Shown here piece by piece: positions 8,558-43,893 of a stretch of DNA of 64,000 nt. Position numbers and translations under genes: made by a program. The stretch lies in NCBI GenBank assembly GCA_001643675.2, contig LSRY02000020.1, positions 1,240,001-1,304,000 of the forward strand. The letters are read 5' to 3'. The stretch comes from Monocercomonoides exilis PA203 (lineage: Eukaryota > Protista > Preaxostyla). The notes under the pieces were generated by a model, which did no database searches, was not told the DNA's origin, and saw only the letters and a program-made list of their open reading frames with translations. Every line of letters starts with the position of its first letter. The first letter of the stretch is position 1.

Positions 8558-10591
8558 TCACAAAAGATATAACCACGGCAGAGTTTCACTGAAGCAGAAT
8601 TCAACTCCCTTCAGGCAATTGTGCAACTGTGCAATGCAAGCATCTTCAGCTCCGCTTTCTTCTAGCTGCTCCTTCGCAATTGTCCAAACAAGTTTCCATC
8701 CCTTTCTGTTGAACTCCTTGTTTGCTTCATCTTCCCGTGTCTTTTGTTCTCTTCTCACATTCTGAATGGCCCTCTCAACAAGCAGACGGATGCAGTTGCT
8801 TGCCTCCATCAGCACCAGTTCTCCTTCATCGCCCATCCTCACAAATTCGTCGACAACAAACCAGAACCACTTCTGCCTGACCGTGTCAAGCACACACTTC
8901 GCATCTCCACATTCGATGCAGCAGTGAAAGACTGAAACTGTTCGAAAGAGTACCCCTCTTCTATTTCCATCCCATTTCTCGCTTTCGTCACCTCTTTTCA
9001 TCGCCTCCGATCCAATTCTTAGAATTGACTCCATCAATCTTTCGTTTTCTGCTACTGCATTTGCCATCCCTTCATTTCCTCCAATCATTGTGCACAGCAA
9101 TCTCAATGAAAACTGAGCGCAGAGATGTTGCGTGCTTGTTTGCTTCATCGCTATTTCTTTTTCTCTTCTCTGCCCTTGTAACCCTTTTCTCTCTTCTTTC
9201 TCTTCACTCCCTCTCTTCTCTGTCATTTCTCTTTCCCCTAAAGACACTGCTGATGTTGTTGTTGCTGCGGATGCTGTGGTCAACATTGAACTTGATGATT
9301 CCTTGTTCATATTCTCTTCCCCTCCAACAAAGGCTCCAAATTCATCTTCTGCATCCTGAAGACTCTCTTCTGAACTCAAGATCTCTGTGATTAGCCCCAA
9401 CACATCCAACTTCTTTTGAAATTGTTCCAGTGCTTTTCCTTCCCATGCAAAAAGCTCCCCTAATGTCTCAAGTGCAAATATCTGGGCAGGAGCAGAGAGT
9501 TTCCTTCCTTCTTTTCCCTTCTTATTTTGATTGTGTTTCTGAATTAGCCCTTCCATCATCTCCATCATTCTCGTATTTTGTAAATTCTTCCTTTCCCCTC
9601 TAAAATCTGAAAATATGAAAGACAAAAGTAATGCAGCATGTTCGTGACATCCATTGGACAAATATATGATGTTGTTCAAGTTATTGCAATACAAGCAATT
9701 TTATACGTAATGTATCGTTGTCAAGCAAAAATATGAAGAAAATAAATAAATAAATAATAAGAAAACGAAAACGAAAAATATAACTATTTGCATATCAAAA
9801 AATTTTTTTCCTTTGTTTCTTTGCCCAAAGTAATTCATTAAAAAAAAAATAATGTTGCTATTTCTTTTCTGTTCAAATAAAATACAAAATATATTGCATA
9901 CGCATAGATTTTGAAAGACATCGTACAGCAAATAATAAACGATTCAATCCCACTTCTGTTTCTATTCCTTTCATTTCCATTTGTATTTCAGGTTCAATAA
10001 CCTTCATTACTTCTTCAGCTTCTTTATCTGTTAACATTTTGTTCATCGAATAGCAAAATGCGCATGCGCTTCGGGCACGCACCCTTTTACTTATTTTTCT
10101 CTGTTCATCATTTATTATCTTCAGAATCTCAGATCCAATTGTTTCTCCAAATTTTCTATTTTCAAGTCTGTTATGAAATTCACTGACTTCTATGCAGCAT
10201 CCGTGTAGTGCTACTTGCTCTGCCACTAGCACAGCCATTTCTTGCTCATCTGATCCATTCTCGGATTTTCTCAATAATTTCACAAGCACTTGTGCAAATA
10301 CATCACATGATCCCATAACACTATCAATCACGCTTATTGAGTTGCTTCTTTTTGTCCATTCTAGAACTTTTCGAAGCTCTTCTGCCCAACACTCACGTGG
10401 ACAACTTGGAATTCTCAAAAACATATCTTTCAGAAGGATTAGAAATATGTTTGAAAATAATTGTTACAAAATTTCCCGATCAAAAATTCAATGTTTATGA
10501 CATTCATTTGTTTATTCAGTAAATATTTTCTAATTATCAAAAACAAAAAAACAATAAAAAATTAATGTGTCACACAAACGTCTGAATCCAT
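8558..10591 (-). CDS. Hypothetical alpha-helical (ARM/HEAT-like) protein of a lineage-expanded family, multi-exon
   Basis: ORFs 9873-10424 and 8558-9694 joined by AT-rich introns, ending in a KEQLEESGAED motif. The start is uncertain. Confidence 0.6.
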
Positions 10592-11248
10592 ATCCTCCAA
10601 ATTAATGCATTCGTGTTTTAAGAGTGCTATGCTCTCGCTGTCATTGCTTATAGACGTGCAACATCCCATTCAAAGCCCCGAAAATAACTTGTTTAATAAT
10701 TGTCTTTTTCGTTATGGGAGAATAATCAAAATGTGACAACATTTCATGCTTTAAGAATTTTGTTCCACTCAATTAATACTACAATTTTTCTCTTTTTTTC
10801 TTTGTTATTGGATACAGGAATGAAAGAATAATAACGATTCGATGGAAATAAAAATCGTTAAACAAATTGTTAAATTTTTCATAATTTCAAAATTTTTTTC
10901 ACGAACAATTATTATCACAATCCATACAAAAACTTTTGTGATACAAGCAAGAAATTTTAAAGATTTATTTATTGCGAAATCAAAATGAATTAGCATTATT
11001 TCTTTTATTTGTTTCTTGTTAAAATGAGAAGAATTTTTTTCACAAGTTATGATGATTAAAATGTGCATTGAACAAAAAAGAAGGAGATTTCAAAAAAGCA
11101 GTTAAACATTCAATTATATAAAATTAATAATCAAAAAAAATTTTTAAATATATTTTTTTATTAATAAGTTATTAATTCCGTGTTATTGAAAAAAATTCAA
11201 GATTCACTTGTCAAATGAATGGATAGAAATAGAATTTAAAAGTGATTA

Positions 11249-11581
11249 ATAAACCCAAAATTTCATAAGCCCTGTTATGTTGTTGTTGTTGTTGAAACAG
11301 AATAAATACAGCATAAAGATATTTTTGACTCACTTTTATCTGTTTATTTTCTGGTTAATGATAGTCCAAAAATTTTTTTGTTTCAATTTTAGTTATTGAT
11401 GAAGATCAAAGGATCTTTTTATTATTTTTGATCATTTGTTTTGCCCATTTTTAACCAACTCTCTTTTTCCGTCAAGTTTTAGGGATAATGTCATGAAACA
11501 TACATATTGACCATTAATAATTCCAAATATTTTTTTGTTTTTTCTTATTTTCTCGATTATTTTTTTCATTTCATCGTTTTT
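11249..11581 (+). repeat. Left arm of 333-bp inverted repeat (partner 24004-24336)
   Basis: Reverse complement of 24004-24336 with one mismatch seen by eye (catacatattg vs catacacattg). Confidence 0.93.
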
Positions 11582-12077
11582 GACAAAAAATGTGTAAGAA
11601 TGAAAATTACTGAACTTATATTTTTGACACACTACCAAATATTATTTCAATGAATTCATAAGATTGAAATGCATTATTTATTTTATTGTTGATTTAAACA
11701 TTTTGATGTATAAAATTTAATGAGCATAATTGTTATGAACAATTATTAATTAAAATAACTAATGCAACAAAATTTGTCAAATTATTAACATGGGAAACGC
11801 TAAGTGTTTCGATTTTTCTTTGATTGAATACAGTCTAAGCCGGATATAATCACATCGCATATTATCACGGAGCTGAAAATATATAATCACATTTTTTTCT
11901 TATTTGGGTGAAATATTTTGTTTATAATTTTAATAACATCCAACGAATATAAATTAATTTATAATTAATTATTTGATAGAAATTAATTTTGATCACTATG
12001 GTTAATTTTCAAGAAATATTTTTTTACGTTTTTGAACCATATTATACAAATTGATATTCGAAATCAAAAAAGTTTGA

Positions 12078-13660
12078 ATGAAAACAACAGGTGTGAATTT
12101 AAGAACATAACTTTCTTTTGTTCAAATATTAGATATCATCAACAAGTTGAGTTCGAACCCTCCTCAATCAAGAAATATCATTGCAAAAGATATTTATATT
12201 GATTTCTCAACAATTACAAAAATATTAAAAAACAAAGAAGCAATATTAAAACAAAGTTCATCAATTATAAAGCCTGATATCACATTTCGAATTCAACCAA
12301 CGATATATCCAGAGTTTGATGAAGCGATGATTATTTGGTTTCGACAAATAAGGTCTTCAAATCCTGAAATGGCCATTGATGGAAGAATGCTTTTAGAGAA
12401 AACACCGTATTTCGCATATCAATTTCACCACAAAAATCCTTCAGAACGCAACTGGGATAGTTGGATAGAACAATGAAGAATGCGATGCGATATAACTTCA
12501 AAGAAAATCGTTGGAGGGTCTTTGTCTGCAGACAAGGATAGTGCAGCCAAATGGATAGATTTAACTTTACCAACAATTATAAATCATTTTGGGGAGAACA
12601 ACATATTCAACGCAGATGAATTTGGTTTATTTTCAATCAATCAGCGAAACAAACTATTGCTGAAGGCAGTTGTTCGGTTTCTGGAATCAAATAATCGAAA
12701 GATAGGGTTTCCGTCCTTCTTGCCGCAAGTATGACAGGAGCAAAGCTGTGCCCTCAAGTGATAGGCAAATCAAAATCGCCAAGATGTTTAAAAGGAATAT
12801 TGTTTCCAACCCTTTATAATCATTCATAAAAGTCATGGATGAATGCAGACATTTTTAATGATTACGTCAAAAGACTTAACGAAAAAATGTCCATTTCACA
12901 TAGAAAAATTATGTATTTTGTGGACAACTGTCCAGCTCATAGTGTAGATTGTGTCAATTTGTCTCATGTTTCATTATTTAACTTCCCTCCTAATGTTACG
13001 TCCATTATCCAACAAATGGACGCAGGTATTATCAAAGTCTTTAAACACTTCTGTATATGTCAACTTCTTAGAAAAAACAGGCAAAAGTTGAATGTGGCGT
13101 TGCAACGAAGATAACAATGCTTGAAGTGTAAAACATGGTTGAAAAAGCTTGGATAAAAGTCAAAAAGGAAACAATAGAAAATTGTTTCAAGCATGCGGAA
13201 TGGGATCCGGCCAAAGAAAAAGAAAAAGAAATTGTGAATATCGATGAAGATGAAATGAATGAGCATAATGTTCTGTATTAAAAACAAAAACCGGAGACAG
13301 CGATCTTTTCGAAATAACTGCAGAAAAATTTTCTCGGCAGAAGATCACGAAATAACAAGAGAAATTCTATCCGAAGAAGAAATTGTTGATTCAATAATTT
13401 CAAAGTCAGATGTTTCCGAAGATGAAATGACCTTGAATGTGAAAGTTGATGAAGAAGGAAGAAATAGAAAAGTCAAAACAATTGGAGAGGCAAATATAAT
13501 GTGGAACATGTAAAAAGAGTTCATTGAAGATAAATCACCACATAAAGATAGTCATAAAGTTATTAACGAGGTGGAAGATTTTCTGGAAAAAGTTGCATTT
13601 AATAATCTGATTCAGCCTTCATTGACAGACTTCAACATGTTCGAAACAACAGATGAACGT
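12078..13660 (+). pseudogene. Degenerate pogo/Tigger transposase (CENP-B-type HTH + DDE_1)
   Basis: STITKILKNKE...YPEFDEAMIIWF...IDGRMLLEK; IFNADEFGLF; IGKSKSPRCLK; SWMNADIF; FVDNCPAH; FPPNVTSIIQQMDAGIIKVFK; C-terminal QPSLTDF. There are multiple stops and frameshifts. Confidence 0.92.
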
Positions 13661-13780
13661 GGTTCACATGAGAACACAGTTGGAATAAAAGGTGATGCAG
13701 GAAAAGAAAAGAAAGTCAAAGTCTTAATGAAAATCAGTTTGTTATCTTTTCGTTTCTATGAGCAAATATATTTCATATGA

Positions 13781-14056
13781 ATATGGGGGAAAATACGGAC
13801 TTTCAAGCTTTCTTTGCACAAGGCACTGAAAAATTACTTCACTCATAACTTTGTTTCGCTTTCTCAGATTTAAAGATAAATTTGATTTTCATATCCTAAA
13901 ACAGGCATCTTTGAAATCAAAACATTAAATTTTCCAAAATTTCACGAATGTCAAAAAATGGACTCATTATTATTGTATTTTTTGATCTCAAAAAGTCAAT
14001 GAAAAGTGAATAATTTTTCAATGAAAATGCCTGAAGAAAAATATTTTGTCCCATAT
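13781..14056 (+). mobile_element. MITE family A, copy 1
   Basis: Termini ATATGGGGGAAAATA...TATTTTGTCCCATAT; homologous along its length to 16810-17086 and 42441-42714. Confidence 0.85.
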
Positions 14057-15519
14057 GTCCTTTTTTTGCTTAATATTTTTTATGAAACATTTCCGAAAAG
14101 CATCCTAATAACCTTTTGAAACATTTATTCATAAATCACATCATGAGCATTTGTTTTTCCAAAAAGATATTAATAAAGTTAAACATTGTTTTGAATATTT
14201 ATTATTTCCTTTTACATCGCAAAGAGATGCTAAAGATAATATAGAAGTGAAAACCAATCATATTTTACACATTATTTGTCGAAAAAACAGATTCAAATCA
14301 GTTTGCATTTCTGCTTAGCATCTCAGAAGGTTTAAGAAATATTTGTACAGAAAAATAAATACATTACTAATTGTTTGAATCATTATGATTAACAATTTCG
14401 ACAGAGTCACCAAAATAGCCTTTGATTGCAACACGATCGTGTATTCAAATTCAGAGTTAATAATTCGAAGAAAAATCGAAAATGGAAAAACATACACCAA
14501 CTTGTAATGATGAGCCTTCTTCTTTGTTTTCAAAGTATATTCGAATAAAAAATGAAAAGAATTGTAAAAAATATTTGATTTCAAGCGAAATATCAAACAA
14601 TCAATGACTAATTAATGCCATCACTAATTTACTGAATGGTTAAGATTTTTTCTTGCATTTTTTAAAATTCTTTGAACACTTGACAATTGATAAAATATGA
14701 TCAGTTCACATGAATGCATTGAAATGAAGTACACTTCAAAGATACAATTTGTGCATTTTTGTTGAACACTGTGATTCTCTTATCAATTATTATTCTGATA
14801 AATCCAAAATGAATTTCAAATTAGAACAAGAAAATAACAAATAGACTTACAGATATTCCAAATTCCCTTCATTTGTCTTTGAAATCATGCATTGATAAAT
14901 AATGACTACGGCAATTTTTTAATATAAGTTATTGTGACAATGCGAATGCTAACACTTTCAGATTTAAAATTATAAAGAAATAACATTCTATTAATACACG
15001 CGACATCTATTTATTCATGGAGATATTATTTCTTTGCAACCTCGATATTTTTCTGAATGAAAAATATTTTTACAACTTCAACCCTCAACTATATTTTTTC
15101 TTATTTTTTATCACTCCAAATTTTTGTGAAATATCAAAAAGCAGCAACACAAAAGCATATTTCATTATTTCTAGAAATATATTTCGGTTTTTTTCATAAA
15201 ATAGTTATAGTTAAAATTTTCTGATATCACGTTTGATATATACCAACAAAAGGATTATTGACATATCGAATGGAATACTATTTGGCAATAATAAACAATT
15301 TCAACACCAAGACATGAGCAGACAATGATTTTATTTTAAAGATTGAGACAAAACATAATAAATATAAAGATATAAGAAAAAGAATAATCAAAGAAAATTT
15401 CCAAAGAAAAGAACAAAAAGGAAAATTTTCCAATAAAGTTTGTGTTGTTCATTTAAGAAGGATAATTTTTTCATCTTGAATTTTTTCATGTTTCTTTATC
15501 TTAATGTTTTGGAACAGAA

Positions 15520-16270
15520 AGTTGTAAAGGGGATAGCGCTTGTGTGTTTGAGTGTTTCTTCACTTCGTGCTCTCAAATATATTCAAGTGGCGGACGGATG
15601 TTTTGCCAAAGTGTTCCGGCTGCTTTCAAAATGAGGAGCCTCCAGTTCATTTCGTGCTCAGCGGTGTCGAATGGTGGAGGAATGGAGTTGTATCCAGCTC
15701 AATCAACTGCTCCAAGCAACAACATTTATTGCTATTTCTTCTTCTTCCATGATTACCATTGCAACGCTTCCACTCCATGTGGCAACGATGTAATGTATCA
15801 TGATCGTTCCAATCATTTCCAATCATCGAATAATCCGTTCTATGAATCGTACACAACGAATACAAATGAAAGAAGATTGTGTTATGCATATGTGTCATCA
15901 AATAATTGGTATCTTCAGTATTTAGAAAAGAAGTTGTGGCTGAAGGAAGGGATGAATGATCTGTATGTTGGAGTCTGTGGAGATGACACGAGCAATCTGT
16001 GCGGGATGAGCGAGAATGTTCCGTGAAATACAGTGGGGCATGCAGTGCAGTCGAGCATGGTGCAGCTGAGTTCGACAATAACTGTGCTGAGTGGGATGCA
16101 TGTGAGAGAAAAGGAGACGATCATTGTTGGTGAAAATTTTTCTGTTGTGGGGATAGTTTAGTCAGTGATTGTGATTGGGACGAATTCTCTTTCTTCATCA
16201 TCGACAACGCTGTTCAATGTTGCTAACCAATAGTTTTGTGCAGTGTGCGTTGAACACAATGACAAAACGA
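15520..16270 (+). pseudogene. Fragment of Pmp/beta-helix surface-protein family
   Basis: GGG.ELY, FFFHD..C...GNDV, YVGVCGDDTSNLCG.SE..P*.TVGHA, with stops and frameshifts. Same motif order as 59100-59500. Confidence 0.7.
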
Positions 16271-16809
16271 CAAGTTGTCCATTGCAAAGTGTGTTTTTTT
16301 TGTTTTTAGGAAACAGAAAAACCTTCGCTTTCTGACAAACTGATTCTATCTTCAGCAACAGCTTACGATAATTCACTTACAATATCATCATCAGCGTGCG
16401 TGCGCTTTACAGTTTGAATTAAGTTTGCAATATGATAAAAAATTTTTTCATAATATTTAATAAATGGGTAATTCTGTTCGAAAAGTCTCACATGTTTAAT
16501 TTTCAATAAATCGAAAATTTCATATTTTGCTCAAAATTTTGTTAACATATACAAAACTTCTCTTATATGGAATCTATTTCTGGATAATGCTATTTCACCC
16601 ATTCATAAGAAGATTCGTGAGTTGAAACAGATATTTGAGCAAAATATAAAATTTTGGCTTTATTTGAAATTAAACATTTGCGACTTTTCAAAAAGAATTA
16701 CACAAATAATTATTTATAAGTTTATTATTTATTTTTCTTCAACATTCACTGATACACCTTTTTTACCACTTTATTTTCACGCAAATATTAATTTCTTTGT
16801 TGATTAAAT

Positions 16810-17086
16810 ATATGAGGGGAAAATATGGACTTTCAAGCTTTTTATACACAAAGCATGGAAAAATTGTTTCACTTATAACATTTTTAAACTAAATTAGATT
16901 TCAAAATAAATATGATTTTCATATCTGAAAACAAACATCATTGATGTGATCACAAAATGTTTTGTGACCTCACATGTTTTTCAAAAAATAAACCCATTTT
17001 TTATGTGTTTTTTGATCTCAAAAAGTTAATGAAAGGAGCATAATTTTTCAATGAAAATGCCTGAAGAGAAATATTTTGTCCCATAT
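16810..17086 (+). mobile_element. MITE family A, copy 2
   Basis: ATATGAGGGGAAAATATGGACTTTCAAGCTT...ATATTTTGTCCCATAT. Confidence 0.85.
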
Positions 17087-18029
17087 CAAATCGTTTTCTT
17101 ATATGTCTGCATGATCTCATTTAATTATCAATTAAAAAACTGTTCTTTTCTTATATCTCTTGAATATCCATTTTTCTTCAATAACACTTGTCTCACAAAT
17201 CGTTCATGATATTCTCATCCAAAATCTGATTATCTCGAGCTATACTTTCTTTTCTCCAACTTTAAATGCTTTTTATTATTCATGTGAATTTGATTTTTTG
17301 GTATGTGGAGAATGAATGAGAAAATGAAAGAAACGAATAATGAATTCTTCAAGAATAATTAAAAACATTCGAATATTGTAATTTTCCTTTTTATTGATTA
17401 ATTTTGCGTTTCACAAATATTGGAAACTTTTTTTTCGTAATCATAACAACAAACACTAATTTTTTAATATGAAAAACATATACACCAAAAATAATTCAAA
17501 TTCGAAAACTTTCAATCAAAATCGAAAATTTGACAAAAAAAAATAACTTTTTGTCAAGATAATTCAATTGTTGAAAAATATTGTTCCTTCATTTTTGAGA
17601 GCATTATCAGCAATGCATGTGTTGTTGATTTCTGCAAAATATGAAGATTTCGAACCAAAATAAACTCAAAAATAAAATATTAACATTACGTAGAACATTT
17701 GTTTCCTTCAATAAGAAATGAGTTGTTTTTGATGAAAAAACACGAAATGAGAGAGCCAATACAGTATTCTTCATTTTTCATAAAATTGGTAAAAAAATAA
17801 AAAATATCTATGAAAAATTTTCTATGAAGAAGAGTTCTTTCAATTGAAATGAGATTAAAAAAATGTTTGAATTTCTCTCATAATTTTTAATATGCAATTG
17901 GACAAAAGAAAGCAAAGAATGATATCGGGAAAAAAGATAAAGTCATTAAAATAACAAATATCATTAGTATTTCAACAATAACGATGTTTTTTAGACTATT
18001 ATTGATTTTAGTCACTTTTTAAAATTTTG

Positions 18030-18200
18030 AAGTTTTTCGAACTTTCGACTTTGCTTGAAAGTTTTTCGATTTCGTTTGAAACTTTTTCGACTTTGAATAA
18101 TAATTTTCGATTTTGAATGAAACTTTTTCGACTTCGAATGAAAACTTTCGACTTTGAATGAAAGTTTTTCGACTTTGGTTGAAAGTTTTTCGACTTTGAA
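18030..18200. repeat. ~20-21-bp minisatellite (AAAGTTTTTCGACTTTGAATG-like), ~8 units
   Basis: Recurring TTTTCGACTTTG cores at about 20-bp spacing. Confidence 0.85.
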
Positions 18201-18929
18201 TAATTTTTGGTGCAACAATAATGATCAAATAACATATCACACAAAGAAATTGTTAATAAGAACATTCTTTCTTGAGCAAGCTTCCAAGAAATTTTTTGTC
18301 CCAATGAAACTTTTACATTCGAAAATTTGTTAAAAATTGATGAATTACTTTTTTTTGTTGACTTGTTTGTTTGATATAGTAATAATAACAATCTTCTGTT
18401 TTAAAGCAATATTTAACAATTAAATAATGTCTGCAATAACACTGAAAGAACTGTCTTTTTTCAAAAACATATCAAAGTGTTATTAATGAGAAAATGAAAT
18501 CGTATAAGTTGAATTATTCTTCAATTGATTGATGTTCGTTCTTCATTAACATGGGTGATTTGAATTTGTCGTTAATAAGCGTTTATGTGCCACTTTTCTA
18601 AAACTTCTTTGCATTTGGGAGATAATTTTTGAAAAATCACCTCAGATCAAAAAATCAATCCATAATATATTTGTTTGATTCTTTCCATTCTAACTTCTTT
18701 AAGAAAAATATATTCATTCAAGATGAAAATTATTATATGAACTCATTTAGGGCATAATATCCTATTTCTTGAAATATCCAGTTTTTATTACATTTATTGA
18801 TCAAATTATAATTCTGTTTGTTCATAAAATCACATGGCAGAAGAAGCATCATTTAATTCTTAAACCTTCTTCTGAACATCAATGAAGCAATTGTCATTTG
18901 AACATCCTTAAGTGATAGGCAAAAAGAAT

Positions 18930-19826
18930 GCAGTGTTAATTCGTTTTTTGATAACTGTAGATGTGGCAGTTCTTCTTATGGTGCTGGAGGAGCAATTATT
19001 CCTTGAGATTTAGCTGACATTATTGTTAATTCAAATTGTATAATTCATATAGCAATTCAATGTGTGGAGGCAACTCTGTTTTCATATCAAAAATTCAATT
19101 AATTGTGGAACACTGTTTTGTTATTGTTTTTTTCACAATAATACATGTGTAAAAACAGGACATGATATTTATCTTTGTTATTCTTCAGAAAACAACATTG
19201 ATACATGCTTCTATTTAACCAGACAAACAAAAAACAGAGTCAGCGCAAATTATATGAAAATTTTTGATCGAAGTGAATGGATTCGTAACGATTTTGGAAA
19301 CGTGAGATTTGTTTCTTCAAATGATTCAGAATCCAATGCCATTGATACATATGCATGTGGACGGGATGAAAGCCATCCTTGCTGCACCATCAGCCGCTGT
19401 CTCACACAGCCGATTCCAGAATTTGTTACTGATATTGAGGTACTCACAGGAACAATTACCGAGACCAAAAGCGTGAATTGAAGAACAGATGCTTTATCAA
19501 TTTATGGCCAAAGCGATTTAGCAGCAACAGTCCAAATTGAATTTGAAACATCAGGGTTATCTCTTTTTTCAGTCTCCACAGTAACGTTGACTGCCAGAGA
19601 CTTTGTTCTTGTGTATGACTGTGCATATGAAAATAATCGTGGGTTAAGACTGTTTGAGATTACTGGAACAGGAGAGATGCATATTAGCAGATTGAACATA
19701 TCAACAGGAAGTGGGCAAACTTCAGAAACAGAATTTTTCTCAAAGCTGATAAACGTTCAGAATGAGATCCTTCAGATGGAAAGTGTGAACAGAGCAAAGA
19801 CTATTTCCGAAACTACGTTATTTTAA
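18930..19826 (+). pseudogene. Second fragment of Pmp/beta-helix surface-protein family
   Basis: GAGGAI, YCFFHNN...GHDIY, ACGRDESHPCCTISRC, with an internal stop at 19481. Confidence 0.7.
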
Positions 19827-20369
19827 TAATTGTCAACACAAGAAATTTCTTTTCCACCAACTGAATGAATATTCTATTGATTAAAAAGAACAATAACGCG
19901 ACATTTTAAAGACATTTGATGAAGAAAGAAATCGACAAATGCGCAGAATCCACAGTCGAAGCAGATGATAAATGAGACGATGCTCTGTAACAGTAGATAT
20001 TGGTTGATGAATCGAGGAAGATCAACGCTTTCCACTCGAAGAAGCCAGAAGCCGAACAGATTCAAAAGGATCAGAATAAGACGAGGAAGTGCGCATATGC
20101 AAAGTTGCAATGCGGTCGTTGCACGGAAGAAGATAGTTATCAGATGCTATCTCGATGCAAATCTGAGATAGATACAGCATTGTGAACGTAAACAAAAGTG
20201 CCATTGAGTTAATAGAAAGATGCATTGTTCACATCCGCAGCGACACCAACTTAACCACAGCATTCAAAGTGAAATTGAAATCACTTCAATCATCTCTTTC
20301 AAATGTCGTAATCTCTTCAATCGTTTCATTGTCTACAATCACCTCTGCACCCATTCCTGCTCCATAAGG

Positions 20370-22900
20370 CTTTAATTTAACATCTGACTTTTAACGTCCA
20401 CTTTCTCTTTTCATTCACATTCCTTTCACATTTTCTCAACACTGTTGTCTTCACGAATCGAATTTCCTTTCATCAAACTTTTTCCTTCATATGAAGAATT
20501 TCACCTATTCTGATTGCCAATTCATTGTGGAATCTCTATCTATTTCTCCGACTCCACAAGCTTCAGCATTTGCAGCGCACGCTCTTCAGCAGCCGGAGGG
20601 TCCATTACTTTTGCAGCTTCATCTGGTTCTCTTTGATTATTTTCTCAAAACACACTTTGCGGTGTTGGATAACCGCTTTTTCACCTTATTTATATCAACA
20701 TCCTTTCTCCCTCTTCCTTTTTCCTCTGCCTCTTCTTTCTCCTCCAGCACTGTGAGCTCCAACAACAGTCGCACCATCTGGAACAACGTCCTCCGCCCTT
20801 CTTTCCACAACACTTCCGACTGTACAGTCTCCACTCACCACTTCAGCACTACCCCAGCTGACACTACGGGAAGCACAATTACACAATTGTCGAGAACCGG
20901 CAAGCCGTTTTCACAATCGCGCCGTTCTCTGACCAAAATAGAGGAGATATACAGTTAACTGCATGGCACATATTCTGCAACAGCAATTACAGAGTGAAGA
21001 AGTTGAAGCGCTGGAGCACCTTTAGCCCAGATGCATATCATGGCAGATAGCACCCAGATAATCAAAATGCAACCAAGAAGATCCTCTGTCGCAATGCATG
21101 AAGCGTATTCTGATAGCACACACTGAAGAAATTCCATTTCATCTTGCGAAATTCCTCTGCAAGCTGCCCCTGATGAAGAATTCGAAGAAATCGATATATC
21201 GCAACAAAAAATAACATTATACAGAGCTTTTATCACCTCCTTCCGCGTTGCTGTTTCTGCCCTGCAGTAGTTCTGCAGAAACCCCAAAAACACAGATATA
21301 TCAGCCTCCCCCTTCTTCGACTGCATTCCCTCAAACTTCCCAAAAAATATCTTGATCTTCTTCTCTGACGCTCTTTCAACCACCATTTTGAAGAACTGGA
21401 AAAACAATATCTCGTCTACCATAAACTCCTCCAGCACAAGCTTCCCTCACGACCTAACATCCACAAATTTCATCCAAAAAAACTCCACTTCGCGGATTAT
21501 CCCCTGCAGCGCTCACTTTCTATTCTTCTGCTCCGTGTGCTTCTTCCGCGTTCACATGAACGCAAAATCCACTAACCACTGCCTCGGAACCGCAACTCCC
21601 GATCACACAGCGCAGCCCTTTCCTAGGTTTGCTGCAATATTATCTCCATGTATCCCCCAGATCGTCGACAGCATCCACGCCAGCAATGGCTGCAGCCCTG
21701 TCTTCAGCGGCATCTGCACCAGTTGCATCTGCACAGACGACTACAAAGCGAGCGGTTTCTGAAGCATACGCACCTTTTTATCCTCCATCTTTTCTTGCTA
21801 CCCATACACTGTGCTCATCAGCCACTTCATCTCCGTCGAAACTTCCAGCAAAGAAGGTTCATCAGCCCCTTTCTTCCCTGCTTCATCTATCCTTCGCATG
21901 CCTTCATAGCCACTGCAGTGCTTCTTCACACGACGCCTTCATTTTCTTTCAATCATGCTTCTTTTGTGCAAGAATCTTTTATTGTTTCTCAATCGCCTCA
22001 TTGAACAGCTCATTCTGCTCTTAAATCGTCTGCTCCTTCACTTTCAACAGCGCCATCAGTATCTTCATTTTCCTTCTCTATCTTGTACATCTTCTACTGC
22101 ACCGTAGCATCTGCTCTTCCACCACCTCCTCCACCATCGCTGTTTATTTTTCTCGCAACACTCACCCTGCGCCACACTTTTGCAACAACTCCCTTCCCAT
22201 TCAGGTCTGGCCCAAGCATCACAGCACTTCCATTTTTAATAATCGCTGCAATCTTCTCCTAACACTTTTCACACAGCCTCAACTGCAGAATCAATAAAGC
22301 CAAAGAAGGAATTATTCCACTCGATGCAGAGGCCAACAAAGAAAGTGTGGCAAACGGAAACCACAAAATCGCATGCGACCCTCCTCGGCTTCCACTCACC
22401 ACTTCACTATGCTGTTTCTGAAACTTCTATTCCTTCTAAATCTCTGCATTGATCAGCTCCTTCTTCTCCATCATCTCGACAAATTGCTCCAGCAGCGTTG
22501 AAGCTGCTGCATTGTATGCAGTTCTCAGCTCCAAAATGTTCCTCTGGCTCATCCGAATTATCTTGTAATTCTCCAGCAGGTTCTCAGCAAGCCATCTCGT
22601 CCACTTCAACATCCGCCCGTTGTCGAATATTTTTGCATCAACATAGAGATCTCCGAATGCCTCTTCTTCATCTCATGCTTCATGTCCTCGTGCTGCTCCT
22701 TCTTGTTCTCCTTCTCTTCACTTCTCTGCTTTCTATACTGCGAAGCAGACGAAGAATACAAAAGGCGCCTAAAGAAGAGAAGAATGCCGCTCTACTATGA
22801 TTACATGACTCTTTGTGAAATATATTCTCTTGTCTTCCAGCAGCTCGATCTGCTTCACAAACACAGCGTCTACAGTTTAACTTAAACTTTTGAAAAGCAA
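20370..22900 (-). pseudogene. Decayed fragment(s) of a large hypothetical protein gene
   Basis: GC-richer, purine-biased minus strand with short coding-like ORFs (20955-21437, 20637-20834) broken by many stops. Confidence 0.5.
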
Positions 22901-24003
22901 GAAGCGCTCGATATTTTCGAACTTCTGAAAAAGATGGAATAGTCTTTCTTCCTTGAATAAGTTTATATGAAATGAAGAAAGTTAAAATAAAATAAGCAGT
23001 CTACATTTTCATATGATGATAGTTCGAAAAATATGTTCAGAAATCTTTTTCTTTTTCTTTTTTGTTTATTTCCTAAAAGAAAAAAACTAACACAACTTAT
23101 CGATCATAAACAATTAACATTTTCGCTATAATATTCAACTATGATCAATTGTTCCCCAGTTAAAATACAAGAAAGTTCACAACTAATTATTTTTGTTCAT
23201 TTTTGTATTCATTGAAAGTTTCAGAGTTTAAAAACCTGCAAGATCAAAAAATTCAAAATCAACAGATTTGAAACTAATATAAAATATATTCATAATCATA
23301 ACTGAATTATCTTTGCATTAATTGTGACAAGTTGAATATAAAATTATATAAGCTCATTGTATTGTGAAATAAAAAAGGAAAAATTCAAATTGTGCGAGTT
23401 CTTGTTAAATAACAAAAAATATTGTAAAAAACTTCAATTATAATTAAATATATTTGATTTTCATAATGAAATTTGAAAAAAGAAAAACTTAAAATGCTAA
23501 TAAAAAGAAAAAACAAGCGAATATAACTTTTTAGAAATAATTACGGAAAACGTAAATTTTATTTTAATATATTGTGGGTTTGATCAGGCTAAAAAAAAGT
23601 GATTTTTCAAAAATTTTCACCCATTTATTATTTGAAGTTGATCTTTGATCTCAAATTATATTATTTTTGATTTTCAATTTTTTTTTTTAAAAAAAAATGA
23701 AAAATGATATTTTATCGAAATAAAATAAATTCAAAATTAAAAATATAAAGCAATCCTTTTGAAAAAATTAATAATTCTGCAATTAAAACTTTGATTGATT
23801 CAATTTAATATAGACGCGATTTTTATCTATCGTATATAATCACTATCAAATATTGTCATAAAAAGTTGTGCAAAAACCGATGTGATTATATCCGGTTTTG
23901 ACTGTATAATTATTATTTTGTGACATACGAGGCTTCAAGTGATTTATCAGGTCACAGAGGTATATTCGATCGGATCAAATATTAAAATTTTCCAATTTAT
24001 TAT

Positions 24004-24336
24004 AAAAACGATGAAATGAAAAAAATAATCGAGAAAATAAGAAAAAACAAAAAAATATTTGGAATTATTAATGGTCAATGTGTATGTTTCATGACATTAT
24101 CCCTAAAACTTGACGGAAAAAGAGAGTTGGTTAAAAATGGGCAAAACAAATGATCAAAAATAATAAAAAGATCCTTTGATCTTCATCAATAACTAAAATT
24201 GAAACAAAAAAATTTTTGGACTATCATTAACCAGAAAATAAACAGATAAAAGTGAGTCAAAAATATCTTTATGCTGTATTTATTCTGTTTCAACAACAAC
24301 AACAACATAACAGGGCTTATGAAATTTTGGGTTTAT
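24004..24336 (-). repeat. Right arm of 333-bp inverted repeat (partner 11249-11581)
   Basis: Direct comparison; includes (CAA)5 and CAGGGCTTATGAAATTTTGGG. Confidence 0.93.
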
Positions 24337-24747
24337 CGAACTTTGTTTCAATTTCATTTAAGTTAGTGTCCACCATTATTGACGCTAACAATATTTTCAT
24401 GAATAAAATATTTTTTTATCTCTTTCGTTAATTTAATTAGAATCTATTATCTTTTTTATTTTATATTGTCTATCTCTTTATTTTACAAAAACAAAAAAAA
24501 AGTTAGGAGCAAATTATTGTTTTTTTTTAAAAAAACAAAACTTTTGCCCCATATTTCAAAATTTGATAACAAATTCCAAAATTGGAGTGTTTTTTTCAAA
24601 GAAAAGCAACAATTTCAGTCTGATATTTGTGGTCAAAAACGACAATCTTTTATTTTCAGTTTCATTTTTTTCTACGGTAATTGTTTTTGAATTCAATTCG
24701 ATAATGATTACACTCTTAAGAATTGAGAAGAACAAATAACAAACAAA

Positions 24748-26192
24748 ATGGATGTTAACGATGTTGGAGATTCAATTGATGAATCACTTGAACTGTCTCC
24801 AACTGAATATTTTTTTGGTTCGTGCATTTCATAATGTTTTAAATGCTCAGTTTCATGCTTTTTATGATACTTGAAGAATTGTTTAATCAACTGGAAGATT
24901 GTGATGTTGATGAGCAAATACAGATAATCCTTGAAATGATCGCATTGATTGAAGAAATAGATGAAGGTGAATTTATTTCAGTCTTCAATGAAGAATTTTA
25001 TGATGAAATGGAAAAAATGATTGATTATGAAAAAATACCAATTGAATATTCACTGTTCTTTCTGAAGCATGTTGGATATTACTGTGAGTTGAAAAAATTG
25101 AAGATTTGTTCTTTTACAGATTCGTTGCTCTCGAAAAGGTTTGAGAAGATGATTGTCGATATAGAGAAGGAAAAGGAAGGAAAGGATGAAAATCTTCTTG
25201 CTAATCTTTGTGAATGCTATGTTTCTCTAAGTATTCTTATCCAATTTGAATTGGCTCCAATATGTGTGCCATGTCTTTTAAAAGTTGCTTTGAAGAAAGA
25301 GGAAAGCGAGGAGACTCAAACAGAAGTGGAATTAGCTTTACTCGCATTGACTTGTTTTGATCATTTTGTATGAACTTTTCTTTTTCCTTTTTGATATTAT
25401 TATTATCATTTCTTATTTGATTATAAGGAATTGGATAAAGAACTATATTTGAAGGAGGTCATCGAAATCATCCAGTATCATCGGGAACATCGCAACCTCA
25501 CCTACCTTGCCCATCATTCTGCTTGGAAGTTTTTGATTGATAGAATTTCTTTTCAAAGCAGTTCGGAAAGCAAGATTGTCAGTGAACATCATTTTGCAAG
25601 AGATGCAGGAAGAGAGTTGGATGAACTTTCAAAACACATAGATTGGAAGAAAAAAGAGGAGGAGGAGGAAGGAGAAAGAGAAACGAAAGACGAGATTGTT
25701 TTAATGGAATGGCTCCGAACCTCGAGTTCTTTCTTCGCCACATGCGGGTTTTTGACTGATGAATTTTTTGGGCTTTTAAGCAGCGCTGTGGGTGTGTTTC
25801 GATTAGCGTATGATTGCAATAAAGAAATAAACGATCGATGCATGTATTTATTTAAAGAAGCAGCGCTGAACATGCATGTGAAAGCTGAAGACTTGATAGA
25901 AAGCGGAGCAGTTGATGTTGTTTTGGAGAAAATAATCCAATTGGATACAACAAATGAGTTGCTAACATATTATTTGTTGTTTTTTAAAAGATTATCAAAA
26001 AGATTGAATGAAGCTCTTGTTGGAGACATTCACGAAGCAAATAGAAGGGCTTTGCAAAAGAAGATATTTGAAAAATTGGAGGAAGAAGGATACGAGGATT
26101 GCATTATTGGATTGAGCCTGTGCATGATACAAGATACGTTTTACGAAGATTATTTCATCAGAAAGCTGGCACGGTTGCTTGTGCTTTTATAA
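24748..26192 (+). CDS. Hypothetical protein of a lineage-expanded helical family (VPCLLKVALKKEESEETQ / FEKLEEEGYED motifs), 3 exons
   Basis: ATG at 24748, introns at about 24818-24875 and 25368-25427, TAA at 26192; ORFs 24843-25373 and 25431-26192. Confidence 0.8.
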
Positions 26193-27447: not shown

Positions 27448-29001
27448 TTAGATTCCAGCTCCTTCTTCTCTGGCGTATCGTGAAGAAAGTCTTGGTCTGT
27501 CAATATGTTTAGCCATCATTTCAGCTGTGTCATTATCAGCATGAATCACACGATTCGAGCGGAGCTTCATTGGAATAAGCAGTGACGACGTTGCATATTG
27601 GGCAGCAGCCGAAGACGCTTTGTTTGAAGAATCGGTTGCCTTGTGGGATGGGTGTGTTTGATGCTCCACAGATTTTCTGTCATTTTTTGGAGAGCGCTCA
27701 ATGACCGAAGGTCGATGGTTGGGCGACGAGCGGCGTTGGCTGCGCGACTGCCGGCTTTTGTCCTCGCTCTGCTCTGCTTTTTGGCTTTTTCGAGCATTTT
27801 TTGCGTAATCAGCGGATCGGCGGTATCCATAGTTGTCTTTCTCTTCTCTTTCGTCTTCGCTTTCGTCTTCGTCTTCTCTGAAATACAGATGCGTCGGATA
27901 AGCTCTGCTCTTCATCAACGACGAACTTGGAGCTACCGATCGACTGAGAATCTGCCCGAACTGCCTGCTGTCATTTCCCTGGTCTCTTTGGCTGTAATGT
28001 GTTTGAAGCCATCTTTCCTCATTCAGATCGCTTCTCCTTTCATTGTCACTATTTCTGTTCAGAAGAAATCGATTATTTGAGTGTTCTTCTGGGTATTGCT
28101 GAATCTGGTCCTGCTCACGTTCTGTCATTTCCCAGTTCTGCCACATTTCGGTGATAGGAAGATATTTGCCAGTCATCTTTTTGTACAACTCAAATTCTCC
28201 ATCTATCCATTCTTTATGCTCCATTTTTTGTTCAAGCAACGGAATGCCTGTTACAAATAGTTGCATTGCGGTCAAGAATAGAGGCGCAATAATAGAGTAC
28301 CACTCTTTGTTTAGAATTGTCGAAGACGAGAGGATAAAAAGTCCCCAGATTGAAATAACATTACCAATAACGTTTGGATGCCTCATAAGCTTCCACAATC
28401 CTCCTTTAAAAATCCTTTTATTGTTTGACATTTTATTTCTGAATTTTTTAAGTTGAGAGTCAGATACTGTTTCCATTATAAAGCCAAGCAGCCATAAAGA
28501 TACTCCGAAAACATCTCGAAAAGCAATTGATCTTTGTTTAACATCTCTGATTGAATCAACAAGTGTAGAAGGAACGCAGTAAGCAAATGCCAGCATAGAC
28601 ATATACAAAGAATATACAAAAGATGCTCTTGATTTTTTCCTATTTCCATTCAAACGTTTTTTTGTTCTCTTTTCTGCAAGGCGCGACGAAAAATGAGAAA
28701 GCAATCTAACAGCCCAAGTTGATGTTAAAGCAAATAACAAAACCTTTAAAATAGAATAAAAAGTGCGAAAAAGAATAAAATTTAATATAATTAAGCCAAC
28801 CTGTCTTGCATGGAAAAACATTGATAGGCTAAAAGTGGAGCATAATGAAGCGAGTACAGAAAGAGGAAGAAAAATGAGTTGCGAATTTACTGATCTACGT
28901 GAATTTATAGCATAGCCAATAAAATTTATTGCAGATATTATTAATGCTGATACAATAAAATTGCTTTTAAGTAAATTATGTCCAAAAACAATTATAGACA
29001 T
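27448..29001 (-). CDS. DUF1295 / steroid 5-alpha-reductase-like membrane protein with charged C-terminal extension
   Basis: RQ..L....WAVRL, GFIMETVSDSQLKKF, GLWKLMRHPN..G...WG, GIPLLE. Probable in-frame intron at 28744-28800. Confidence 0.85.
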   Translation of the reverse strand: MSIIVFGHNLLKSNFIVSALIISAINFIGYAINSRRSVNSQLIFLPLSVLASLCSTFSLSMFFHARQVGLIILNFILFRTFYSILKVLLFALTSTWAVRLLSHFSSRLAEKRTKKRLNGNRKKSRASFVYSLYMSMLAFAYCVPSTLVDSIRDVKQRSIAFRDVFGVSLWLLGFIMETVSDSQLKKFRNKMSNNKRIFKGGLWKLMRHPNVIGNVISIWGLFILSSSTILNKEWYSIIAPLFLTAMQLFVTGIPLLEQKMEHKEWIDGEFELYKKMTGKYLPITEMWQNWEMTEREQDQIQQYPEEHSNNRFLLNRNSDNERRSDLNEERWLQTHYSQRDQGNDSRQFGQILSRSVAPSSSLMKSRAYPTHLYFREDEDESEDEREEKDNYGYRRSADYAKNARKSQKAEQSEDKSRQSRSQRRSSPNHRPSVIERSPKNDRKSVEHQTHPSHKATDSSNKASSAAAQYATSSLLIPMKLRSNRVIHADNDTAEMMAKHIDRPRLSSRYAREEGAGI

Positions 29002-29546: not shown

Positions 29547-32500
29547 TTGAACTGTAATGTTTTTCGAATAATTTTGAAAGAAATTGTAAGCAACGCTTCC
29601 ATTTTTGCAAAGGAATCACTTTCAAATAAGGTAGAAAATAGTGAAAATGAGTTTAAACTTTCTCGATCGTTGTCAATATCTGAATACAATGTTTCATGTC
29701 AAAATAAAAGCGCATCGGTATCTCCTGCATTTAAAGAGATTTTTGATGAGAATCCTACTTTTCATCATAAACAACATGCAATCGGAAACGTGCATAGATC
29801 AAAGAGCCTTTCTGAATCTCCAAATTGGAGTAATTCTTTTCATTTTGATATTGTGACAGGCTCAAAAAAGCACCATAGTGAAAAGAATCTGTTACTTTCC
29901 ATGCGTTCTTATAAAAAAATAAAATTAACGGGTGATGGTAAAGAAGATGAAAAATGTTCAAAATTTTCTGAAACAGATGATATAATTAGATGTAAATATA
30001 AAATTGACGAAATCCAAGCTCAAATGTCTTCTGCGAAGAAAAGGCACAATGATGCATCTATTTTTCATAGGAAGGATACATTGAATGGATCGTTTTTCTC
30101 CCTTTCACGAGTTTCTTCAGAATTAATCGCATTCAATGGTCACATTTCTAGTGGAAAGCAGTGCAGAAAACCGTCTACAAGAGACTGCAAATCTTTTTCT
30201 CCAAGCATGCTTCCACTTTCAATAAACAATTGGACTTTTTCCAAAGGATGTTCATTATCGAAGCCTTTACATAGCAAAAGATGCAAGAGTGAAAAAGAAA
30301 ATGTTCAGTTTCCTTCGTTGGTACGATCTTGTTCTCACCAACATTCGTTTTCTCTTCGCACTTCAAAGACAACTTCTTCTGGACCTCTTCCAAAGCTTCT
30401 ACACAGTTCTCTAGAATGTTTACACTTAAACAATGAACAAGAAAAAAGCAGAAGTGTATGCGAAATTGGGAGCAAAGAAAAACAAGAAGATATCATCACT
30501 CGCTGTAATTCAATGTCTAATTTCGATAATACCAAAGTAAAGCGCAGCGTGAGGACAGATCTGTTTGACGAACCAGATGATTCTTCAAAAAATTCAGTCA
30601 ATTCTTCAATTTTGATCCCATATTTCACTTCATGCCGTCAAGCTGTACAAAAGGAAAAATCTTGTACTTCTTCAGCGCCTGTGCGAATTCCTGATGGAAG
30701 TAACGATTGTGCTGAATTGAATGAGTTATTTCCTTTGGTGAATACCGCATCCCACAAAATTTCAAATCAAGCATATCACGAAAGGCTTCCAGCCGAGGAA
30801 AATAATAACTTAAAAGAGAAAAAAGTGGATGCAGCAAATAAACTCGCTATTGTGAGCAAAAATAATTCCGAAGCAGAAACAGATTTAGTCATCGAAAACA
30901 AAAGACGAAGAAACCAAAAAGTACAAGTGAAAAAACACCCACTTTCAGCTCCTGCTCGTTTGGTTGACATTTACTCAGCTGGGGAATTTCCTTTACACAT
31001 ATGTTTTCCTTTGGCATCATCTTCCAAATCAGGTTTAAAGGATGATTCAGTCAGGGTTTGCAGTGGAAGGAGCAATATGCATTGCGGTGATATTGAGGGG
31101 AGCAAGTGTCCGGTTTTAGATTCTTCTGGCTTCAATCAAAGCAACAGTATGTTCACAAACAACCACAGTAGCAATGATAACTGTGTTTGCACCGATAATC
31201 ATATTTGCATTGACAACTTCAAAAATGAAAAGCACACATATACAGACAATGTCAGAAGTGAACAATATGACCATAATTATTTACATAAAAAACAATGCAA
31301 TCAACATTATCCCATGAGCAGCGCTAACATTCAAAAAGAAAGGAAACTGTTTCCCAACGAGGAAAGTCCCTTTTATGCAAATGAAATGTCAGAACGTGGA
31401 GAGGCAGGTGAGCAGCAAATTATGAAACAGGAAGACAGTAAAAAATGTGCAGCGTTCGATATGTTCGCCGATGGTCATCGGCATCATGAAAGAACTCATT
31501 CCGCTTTTTGTGCAGATCGGATACCTGCTCATAAAATTGGAAGTGAAAAAAATTCACACACATTTTCTTCTCTTCCTCATTGGCAAGAGAAAAGCAAAAC
31601 GCATGAGGGAAAAAGTGAGTCAACGAGCAATCTATTTGCTTCGTCTGAAGCAAATAGTCTCCTCCAAGAGATGCAAGCAATACGAGAATCATACTCACAC
31701 AAATCTTCATCTGAGCACCACAACTCACTTCATCATCGTTCCTTCAATGATACGAAATCTGAAGGATTCGGAAATAGAGGAGATAAGAAATCTATGTGCT
31801 CACAGCTCACATCCCGCTCGGATGGACAGTTGGATCCGTCTGCGACTTCTTCAAAGTGTTCACAATTCGGATTGCAAGCATCACCTTCAGAGAACGATAA
31901 GAAAAAGTCACAGAAGAAGAGTTATCAATTAAATCAAGATACCAAAAGCGAGAATGGACTGACTTGCGTTTCCAGAGTTATTTCTCTTGCAAAATGCTCT
32001 TCTGAAGCATCGTTTTGCACATTTCACGGAAGCTCTTCTGCGGAATGCTTATCTTCTGGTTCATCTCTTGATGTCTGCCCTTCATCTCAAACACCAACAC
32101 TTGAAACGAGTTCGCCTAACGTGACTGTTTCTGCTTCTGCTACTACTTCTGCAGATGCACTTCCTTCTTCTTCTTCTTCTTCTTCTCAATCGATAAAGCC
32201 ATCTACCATTTTAACGGACCGTCTACCAATTGAAGAGGACACTTGCAAGAAGGGAGGTAGCCATATCAAGCACAATCCCAGCACACACTTCACACACTTC
32301 ACACACTCCACGCATGACACTCACAACACTCACAACACTCACAACACTCACAACACTCACAACACTCATAACACTCGCAACACTCACAAAAGCACCAAGC
32401 AATCGCAACAGGAAGATAAGCAATCATTTCACAAAAGCTTGATCGAGCCTTTGTCTCCTGCTAACAAACCTTCATCGAAGTCATCTATCACGTCAGATTC

Positions 32501-42828: not shown

Positions 42829-43893
42829 TAGTGGAGTTTTTTATCCGGACATTTTTTTTATCCGGACAAAAAGTTAAAATTTAAATATCTCAACAATTAT
42901 TCAATATTAATTTCCAGCAATTTGCACAGTTGTATGTTAGCATATATGACATCGATTCATATACAAAATTTTCATAGCAGTGTTGTATAATTTTTGAAAT
43001 AAATAATTTTTATTTTTGAAAATCCGACTTTTGATGAATTTTTCTATTTTAATAAGATGATTTGGTTCGTCTTTTATTCATAGTAATTAATTTTTCTATA
43101 TTGAAAATTATTCTGGTTATTTTTTATTTTCCACAATTTGCTCTTTCTAATGGAATGAAAATCTGTCATTTTTGAAAAATTTTTGTTAATGGGACAACTT
43201 AAAAAATATTTTTCATTAAATGCAGGACCATCGAACAAAAACAAACACATACATTAATTAATATAACAGTTATATAAAATTACTGAGTAGTTGTCATTCA
43301 AAATGTTTCAATGTTTGTCTTTGAAAACAAATAAAAATAGAAATAATTTCTAATCGATTTGTGATATTTATCATTTATGGATGTTAATCAATTTGTTGAA
43401 ATAAATATTGAAACATTTTGAATGACAACTACTCAGTAATTTTATATAACTGTTATATTAATTAATGTATGTGTTTGTTTTTGTTCGATGGTCCTGCATT
43501 TAATGAAAAATATTTTTTAAGTTGTCCCATTAACAAAAATTTTTCAAAAATGACAGATTTTCATTCCATTAGAAAGAGCAAATTGTGGAAAATAAAAAAT
43601 AACCAGAATAATTTTCAATATAGAAAAATTAATTACTATGAATAAAAGACGAACCAAATCATCTTATTAAAATAGAAAAATTCATCAAAAGTCGGATTTT
43701 CAAAAATAAAAATTATTTATTTCAAAAATTATACAACACTGCTATGAAAATTTTGTATATGAATCGATGTCATATATGCTAACATACAACTGTGCAAATT
43801 GCTGGAAATTAATATTGAATAATTGTTGAGATATTTAAATTTTAACTTTTTGTCCGGATTAAAAAAAAGTCCTAATAAAAAAAAACTACCCTA
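42829..43893. mobile_element. Foldback element: 453-bp inverted arms (42860-43312 / 43407-43859) with 94-bp spacer
   Basis: The arms read as exact reverse complements; the outer ~30 bp are degenerate with a duplicated TCCGGAC motif. Confidence 0.9.

Follow-up and report, generated by a model that had tools for sequence, protein, structure and literature searches.

Nested transposons within a decayed foldback element with near-identical arms in Monocercomonoides exilis

We analyzed a stretch of 64,000 nucleotides from the genome of Monocercomonoides exilis PA203 (contig LSRY02000020.1, positions 1,240,001 to 1,304,000 of the forward strand; hereafter the window, numbered from its first letter). 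Positions 11240-24336 of the window hold a three-level transposon nest, in which a pogo-family transposon sits in the loop of a foldback element and itself carries further insertions. The three insertion levels were ordered through empty-site comparisons. An inverted-repeat search run over window positions 10000-26000 revealed one outstanding inverted repeat, 11249-11592 against 23993-24336 (344 nt, 98% complementary), with a spacer of 12,400 nt. Base-by-base alignment showed that its core, made of a left arm at 11249-11581 (plus strand) and a right arm at 24004-24336 (minus strand), is 333 nt long with a sole mismatch, at 11505 versus 24080. The edges of this core are sharp in the same alignment, since mismatches affect 5 of 11 positions beyond its inner edge and 6 of 9 beyond its outer edge. 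The inner margins of the two arms, at 11582-11592 (plus strand) and 23993-24003 (minus strand), therefore lie outside the homogenised tract, and the left one is homologous to the arms of the foldback family described below. The left part of the foldback loop follows at 11593-11830 and the right part at 23905-23992 (both plus strand).

The pogo-family element occupies 11831-23904 (plus strand), with terminal inverted repeats (TIRs) at 11831-11857 and 23878-23904. The left part of the loop ends in its TA target (11829-11830), which was duplicated by the insertion, and the right part begins with the second TA (23905-23906). The gaps between the pogo and the arm cores measure 249 bp on the left and 97 bp on the right. 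The pogo TIRs are 27-30 nt long, 93% identical and conserved across the five copies that we found in the genome; a TA duplication flanks the window copy and all four others, and the left TIR of the window copy bears one private change. Once the pogo and one TA are removed, 1012 bp remain, divided into 344 + 324 + 344. This fused sequence (11249-11830 plus 23907-24336) aligns over positions 1-1012, loop included, to 12 uninterrupted copies found elsewhere in the genome, at 70-74% identity. The fusion junction corresponds to a single column of the multiple alignment, and the closest copy has TA there. This full-length match to uninterrupted copies means that the pogo inserted into the foldback loop.

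An earlier reading of this DNA, made without database searches (the sequence-only reading), had described the near-identical inverted arms (about 1 mismatch in 333, 12.4 kb apart) and, about 250 and 95 bp inside them, the pogo TIRs with their TA. Our alignment and coordinates agree with both. It had also placed the TA-flanked pogo within the spacer of a ~1-kb foldback, and comparison of the fused spacer and arm with the genome did recover intact ~1-kb palindromes of the same family, which the fused 1012 bp match from end to end.

We then characterized the foldback family in 82.3 Mb of genome sequence (101 contigs). It comprises around 85 elements without coding capacity, which measure about 982 bp, consist of two arms of roughly 345 bp around a loop of 290 bp and are bounded by TA. 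The arm used as a query gave at least 40 scored places among 175 candidates, mostly inverted pairs of about 982 bp end to end, and the copies that were measured span 966-984 bp. According to the flanks of 12 full copies, the family begins with GGGTGATTT directly after a TA and finishes with AAATCACCC directly before another. A 3-bp duplication of the PIF type was rejected, as the flanks agree on TA alone. The terminal 23-mer occurs 86 times in forward and 87 times in reverse orientation (173 termini), while its reversed control does not occur (0), and TA is present at about nine in ten of the listed 23-mer sites. A Tandem Repeats Finder search for tandem sub-repeats in the arm gave only weak micro-repeats. 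The outer element of the nest belongs to this family of many dispersed, non-coding copies of uniform size, whose termini are shared with a transposase-encoding element.

The window foldback is a decayed member of the family. Its left outer terminus, at 11240-11248 (plus strand), matches GGGTGATTT at 6 of 9 positions (3 of 9 changed) and is preceded by AA, not TA. On the right side, the outermost 9 nt of the family and the flanking TA are absent beyond 24336. Most other copies have intact termini with the TA duplication. The sequence-only reading had noticed that no target-site duplication is visible outside the arms; this is true, because the family termini lie 9 nt beyond the arms that it had delimited, the left one being decayed and the right one lost.

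At least seven pairs of foldback-type termini in the genome are spaced at ~2.03 kb (L070:301-2329, corresponding to C25:501824-503852; L071; L075; and at least four further pairs). L070 and L075, two diverged copies, each retain two consecutive open reading frames (ORFs), the first of 79-116 aa and the second of 401-403 aa, and the larger ORF of this element matches the Pfam domain DDE_1 (3.5e-15). L070:301-2329 has only its ends in common with the foldback, over 34 nt (94%) and 50 nt (86%). The most fitting reading of the foldback is that it derives from a pogo-like transposon and has long TIRs but no coding capacity, and the 2.03-kb pogo-like element is likely its autonomous partner, whose transposase would mobilise it. 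This 2.03-kb family may still be active, because two diverged copies keep both ORFs. A second foldback, at 42837-43882 of the window, has arms of 480 nt (99%) around a loop of 86 nt. It had been noted earlier, at 42829-43893, as having the same design as the outer element. It is real, and its termini follow the same design (a TA, an end of the GGGT type and two ATCCGGAC motifs in direct orientation), but it belongs to a separate family.

To place the window arms within the family, we compared the arms of 18 copies (36 arms). Those of the window are 80-85% identical to the arms of all other copies, which are 84-94% identical among themselves, and the window copy is the most diverged of those analyzed. 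In a maximum-likelihood tree of the 36 arms, its left and right arms pair as sisters (support 100/100), and no stem in the tree is longer than theirs (0.19 substitutions per site). Each arm position was then scored against the family majority. The window arms have 50 derived states in common, none specific to the left arm and 9 specific to the right, most of the latter in the outermost 11 nt of the right end, which are non-homologous. Fifty parallel changes cannot be independent, and one arm has therefore received sequence from the other. On either side, the tract stops short of the end of the family's arm, and the margins beyond it diverge by about the 2 x 0.19 expected for unconverted sequence. 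Such a sharp-edged tract is what conversion would leave in an old element and argues against a recent insertion; gene conversion is the probable homogenising mechanism. The earlier description of a young foldback does not hold: the longest stem, the decayed or missing outer termini and the derived bases common to both arms indicate an element that is homogenised, not young.

The same scoring separated the 18 copies into two types. Twelve are of the converted type, with 7-50 shared derived states versus 0-3 arm-specific ones (truncated ends set aside). The remaining six show the opposite, with 13-33 arm-specific states; one of them, for example, has 3 shared versus 33 specific states. Conversion thus looks all-or-none per copy, as far as can be judged from these counts. 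Long TIRs have been proposed to attract recombination and conversion (PMC3573991). In the same tree, the right arm of one copy (L027, C91:385060-386041) groups with both arms of another located 19 kb away (L006, C91:404316-405297), while its left arm falls elsewhere, and the left arm of L012 is sister to that of L014. Such chimeric copies imply that sequence is also exchanged between elements.

Four other loci (C20, C1, C69 and C24) combine sequence matching the leftmost 1.9 kb of the window pogo with sequence matching its rightmost 0.3 kb. The C20, C1 and C69 copies measure 5.6-6.2 kb and are collinear with the window copy save for five window-only blocks; comparison with the empty C20 site shows inverted ends and short flanking repeats for every one of these blocks. 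The C24 copy reaches 14.6 kb and is enlarged by different insertions. None of the nested insertions is common to two of the five copies compared. The 12,074 bp of the window element hence consist of a 5.6-kb backbone and five private nested insertions. The sequence-only reading had called it a 12-kb cargo-carrying pogo; the family is in fact 5.6 kb long, and the extra 6.5 kb correspond to these five insertions. The word cargo is partly apt for the pogo family, while the large size of the window copy is due to nesting. At 11853-11896, the window pogo is without about 40 bp of left subterminal sequence that are present in C20, C24 and C1. The terminal ~60-76 nt of the pogo are also found as many short copies resembling MITEs (miniature inverted-repeat transposable elements).

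Element 11831-23904 was assigned to pogo on the basis of its TA duplication, its short TIRs and a transposase of the CENP-B/Tc5 type with a DDE_1 domain. In the window copy, the transposase gene (12147-13513, plus strand) is broken into four ORF pieces of 84-109 aa, which match CENP-B_N (2.6e-5) and DDE_1 (1.8e-10); no uninterrupted transposase ORF, as an autonomous element would have, is found in this copy. The C20 copy (C20:617077-622685) encodes an intact transposase of 550 aa (L055:4714-6363, minus strand) with matches to DDE_1 (1.1e-35), CENP-B_N (6.6e-11) and HTH_Tnp_Tc5 (8.1e-8), and is a candidate autonomous copy. Besides the transposase, the backbone contains ~3.5 kb of other sequence. 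One backbone ORF (15544-16026, plus strand; L055:2642-3178, minus strand, in the C20 copy) belongs to a family seen in M. exilis only, with at least 24 proteins annotated as "uncharacterized" on many contigs, and our homology search with this ORF returned no relatives other than these. The same ORF, the second of the backbone, had no Pfam match.

The five nested insertions, all given on the plus strand, are the following. A 267-bp MITE at 13786-14052 has GGGG...CCC ends and ATATG on both sides, and is not found at this site in the other four pogo copies. A second MITE, at 16466-16703 (238 bp), has inverted arms of 106 nt, is flanked by AAAT left and right and has ends similar to those of the 5-kb element mentioned below. 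It is followed at 16814-17081 by a second copy of the 267-bp family (268 bp, 78% identical to the copy at 13786-14056), and at 17480-18210 by a 731-bp insertion with inverted ends and an internal tandem array of 20-21-nt units. The largest insertion, at 18617-23622, is a repeat element of 5,006 bp that has TIRs of ~24 nt and is bordered by ATTT at either end. It occurs elsewhere at full length at C91:397878-402900 (85%) and partially at C53 and C17, and no Pfam domains were found in its ORFs. Within it, 18920-19896 corresponds to a high-copy repeat of ~1 kb (at least 35 scored copies at 72-78% identity, from 501 candidates), and no long ORFs were seen at the loci that hold this repeat. Four of the five pogo copies carry, within or next to them, independent insertions of the ~270-bp MITE family with GGGG...CCC ends, at differing positions (13786-14052 and 16814-17081 in the window; L056/L059 for C24; L058 for C69; L057 for C1).

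We also searched for the nest in short reads, using Logan contigs and unitigs of four runs. In run X1, a 333-nt unitig spans exactly 24004-24336 with a depth of 162, versus 84-104 for its unique neighbours (about twofold), and other unitigs bridge 24307-25319. Loose unitig ends lie at 23623, at the edge of the nested 5-kb element, and around 23906, at that of the pogo. A weak joint from 23907 to 24004 (one contig, with 30 nt on the shorter side) was disregarded. The unitigs support two identical copies of the core and the junction between the right arm and its flank. An artefact of assembly or polishing, which would have created the inverted duplication or its near-identity, could be suspected since the assembly is ONT-based (Oxford Nanopore Technologies) and Illumina-polished (PMC8767320) and since the read support consists of short-read unitigs. 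We find this highly improbable: the two halves rebuild a complete family member with the correct loop, the read-only unitig ends exactly at both edges of the tract at about double depth, bridging extends into the unique right flank, and 11 other copies also have near-identical arms.

The age of the pogo raises the question of when the arms became identical. The window copy has 238 private substitutions over 5134 backbone sites (4.6%) and differs from the other copies by pairwise distances of 12-16%, while the two closest copies of the family are 7.4% apart. Had the arms escaped conversion since an insertion that old, their 333 nt should differ at about 31 positions; we observed 1. Therefore, either most of the divergence of the pogo predates its arrival, or the arms were homogenised later across a spacer of 5.6-12.4 kb. 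In our best explanation, an old and immobilised foldback of ~1 kb would first have resided at ~11240-24336, as a non-autonomous, long-TIR member of a TA-flanked family having its ends in common with the 2-kb pogo-like element. A 5.6-kb pogo would have inserted at a TA in its loop and taken five further insertions in place, reaching 12.1 kb. Gene conversion between these inverted repeats, within the chromosome, would recently have rewritten one arm from the other, most likely after the loop was already many kb long. The nesting order, the family membership, the decayed termini and the derived bases shared by the arms are direct observations, and we hold this explanation, taken as a whole, with high confidence. 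That the conversion came after the pogo insertion is, in our judgement, fairly likely, because no pair of pogo copies is closer than 7.4% and no swollen composite was found twice.

The reverse order, in which the foldback formed or its arms were homogenised first and a decayed, swollen 12-kb pogo was recently moved in trans into the loop, is less likely, and we regard it as an unlikely account of the locus. It would fit with the intact TA duplications of the pogo and its nearly intact TIRs, C20 offers an intact source of transposase, and private substitutions give only an upper bound on the time spent at a site. Against it, the foldback is not young, and the distances between pogo copies together with the lack of common nested insertions speak neither for recent activity nor for mobile composites. 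Moreover, Tc1/mariner-type elements transpose poorly when the substrate is 12 kb long. The sequence-only reading had also raised the possibility that the 333-bp arms are themselves the working termini of a 13-kb gene-carrying transposon. Long arms do flank a large interior here, and likewise in a second interrupted copy of the foldback family (C21:60385-66048; L072:915-5573), where arms of 358 nt, 99% identical, lie 4,958 nt apart. Nonetheless, the true termini lie 9 nt outside the tract, altered on the left and missing on the right, so that the family termini and TA that a working unit needs are absent, and the interior corresponds to a pogo that has TIRs and a TA duplication of its own and sits at one point of the loop. 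The C21 interior is likewise an independent element, a ~4.6-kb hAT with its own 66-nt TIRs and an intact ORF of 918 aa (Dimer_Tnp_hAT). Genome searches gave no second copy of the 13-kb unit. Neither functional termini with a duplication nor further copies, which define a Pack-type giant element, were found; the composite occurs once, and its layers have their own ends and relatives. We consider a giant element extremely improbable.

Several points weigh against conversion across the long loop of an old foldback, the history that we favour. The private substitutions of the pogo could predate its arrival at this site, in which case conversion may have come first, and the intact 550-aa transposase of C20 could have mobilised a decayed composite in trans. 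The C21 hAT may be young, given its intact ORF, and C21 is consequently no proof of conversion across a long spacer. The right outer terminus of the window foldback was possibly lost by one recent deletion, in which case the left terminus alone would carry the age signal from the ends. Finally, the arm analysis took in a partial sample (18 of ~85 family copies), and the four read runs all come from the assembly's own sample.

The components of the nest resemble known systems to different extents. In Caenorhabditis elegans, Tc7 is 921 bp long with inverted repeats of 345 bp, and its outer ~38 bp match Tc1. The foldback is similar in being ~1 kb long and non-coding, with arms of ~345 bp, a unique loop and TA flanks, and in having only its outermost tens of bases in common with an autonomous, short-TIR member of the Tc1/mariner-pogo superfamily. 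Unlike such elements, it resides in an oxymonad protist, its sequence is unrelated, and its partner, by which it would be mobilised, is pogo-like (DDE_1) and not Tc1. The long-armed architecture is known from non-autonomous Tc1/mariner derivatives of C. elegans, such as Tc7/CeleTc1 and Tc6, and from further long-TIR MITEs (PMC3814204). The inner element resembles pogo/Tigger (Tc5-type) transposons and their MITE derivatives by its TA duplication, its ~27-nt TIRs, the CENP-B_N, HTH_Tnp_Tc5 and DDE_1 domains of its family and the short MITE-like terminal copies. However, a 5.6-kb backbone is long for a pogo, ~3.5 kb of it is not transposase, and the window copy is broken and swollen.

Arm-to-arm conversion occurs in large genomic palindromes. 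As in the TIRs of Galileo and Foldback, the arms within a copy evolve together while copies diverge, and chimeric copies are found too; in contrast to these, conversion here appears all-or-none per copy and is, in the window copy, observed at a spacer of 12.4 kb. The foldback further differs from Drosophila FB and Galileo in that its arms are devoid of tandem sub-repeats and its duplication is TA, not 7-9 bp. With its three orderable insertion levels, the locus is comparable to the Russian-doll transposon nests of many eukaryotes and shows no fundamental difference from them, except that its outermost shell was re-homogenised and falsely looks like the youngest layer. Elsewhere in the window, a gene at 27451-29001 (minus strand) shows 96% identity to a known M. 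exilis protein, and 29547-38216 (plus strand) is an uninterrupted ORF of 2,889 aa that matches Pumilio (PUF) repeats.

Our literature search on M. exilis and transposable elements gave no match. Repeats make up 46% of the M. exilis assembly, and unclassified repeats 35% of the genome (PMC8767320). The locus dissects several of these unclassified families, namely the foldback and its likely partner, the 5.6-kb pogo with one intact copy, and at least three families of nested MITEs or elements. It is an ordinary transposon nest and a tidy case of concerted evolution of long inverted repeats, and its apparent age paradox is resolved because the arms evolve in concert. As a warning for dating, the identity of long TIRs here dates the most recent conversion between the arms and not the element itself. 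It is conceivable, though we hold it as a rather doubtful proposal, that M. exilis has a process that re-homogenises inverted repeats with unusual efficiency, over whole arms, in an all-or-none manner and across spacers of at least 12 kb. If true, foldback MITEs would stay perfect palindromes indefinitely and could in turn seed far larger palindromes and inverted gene duplications in M. exilis.

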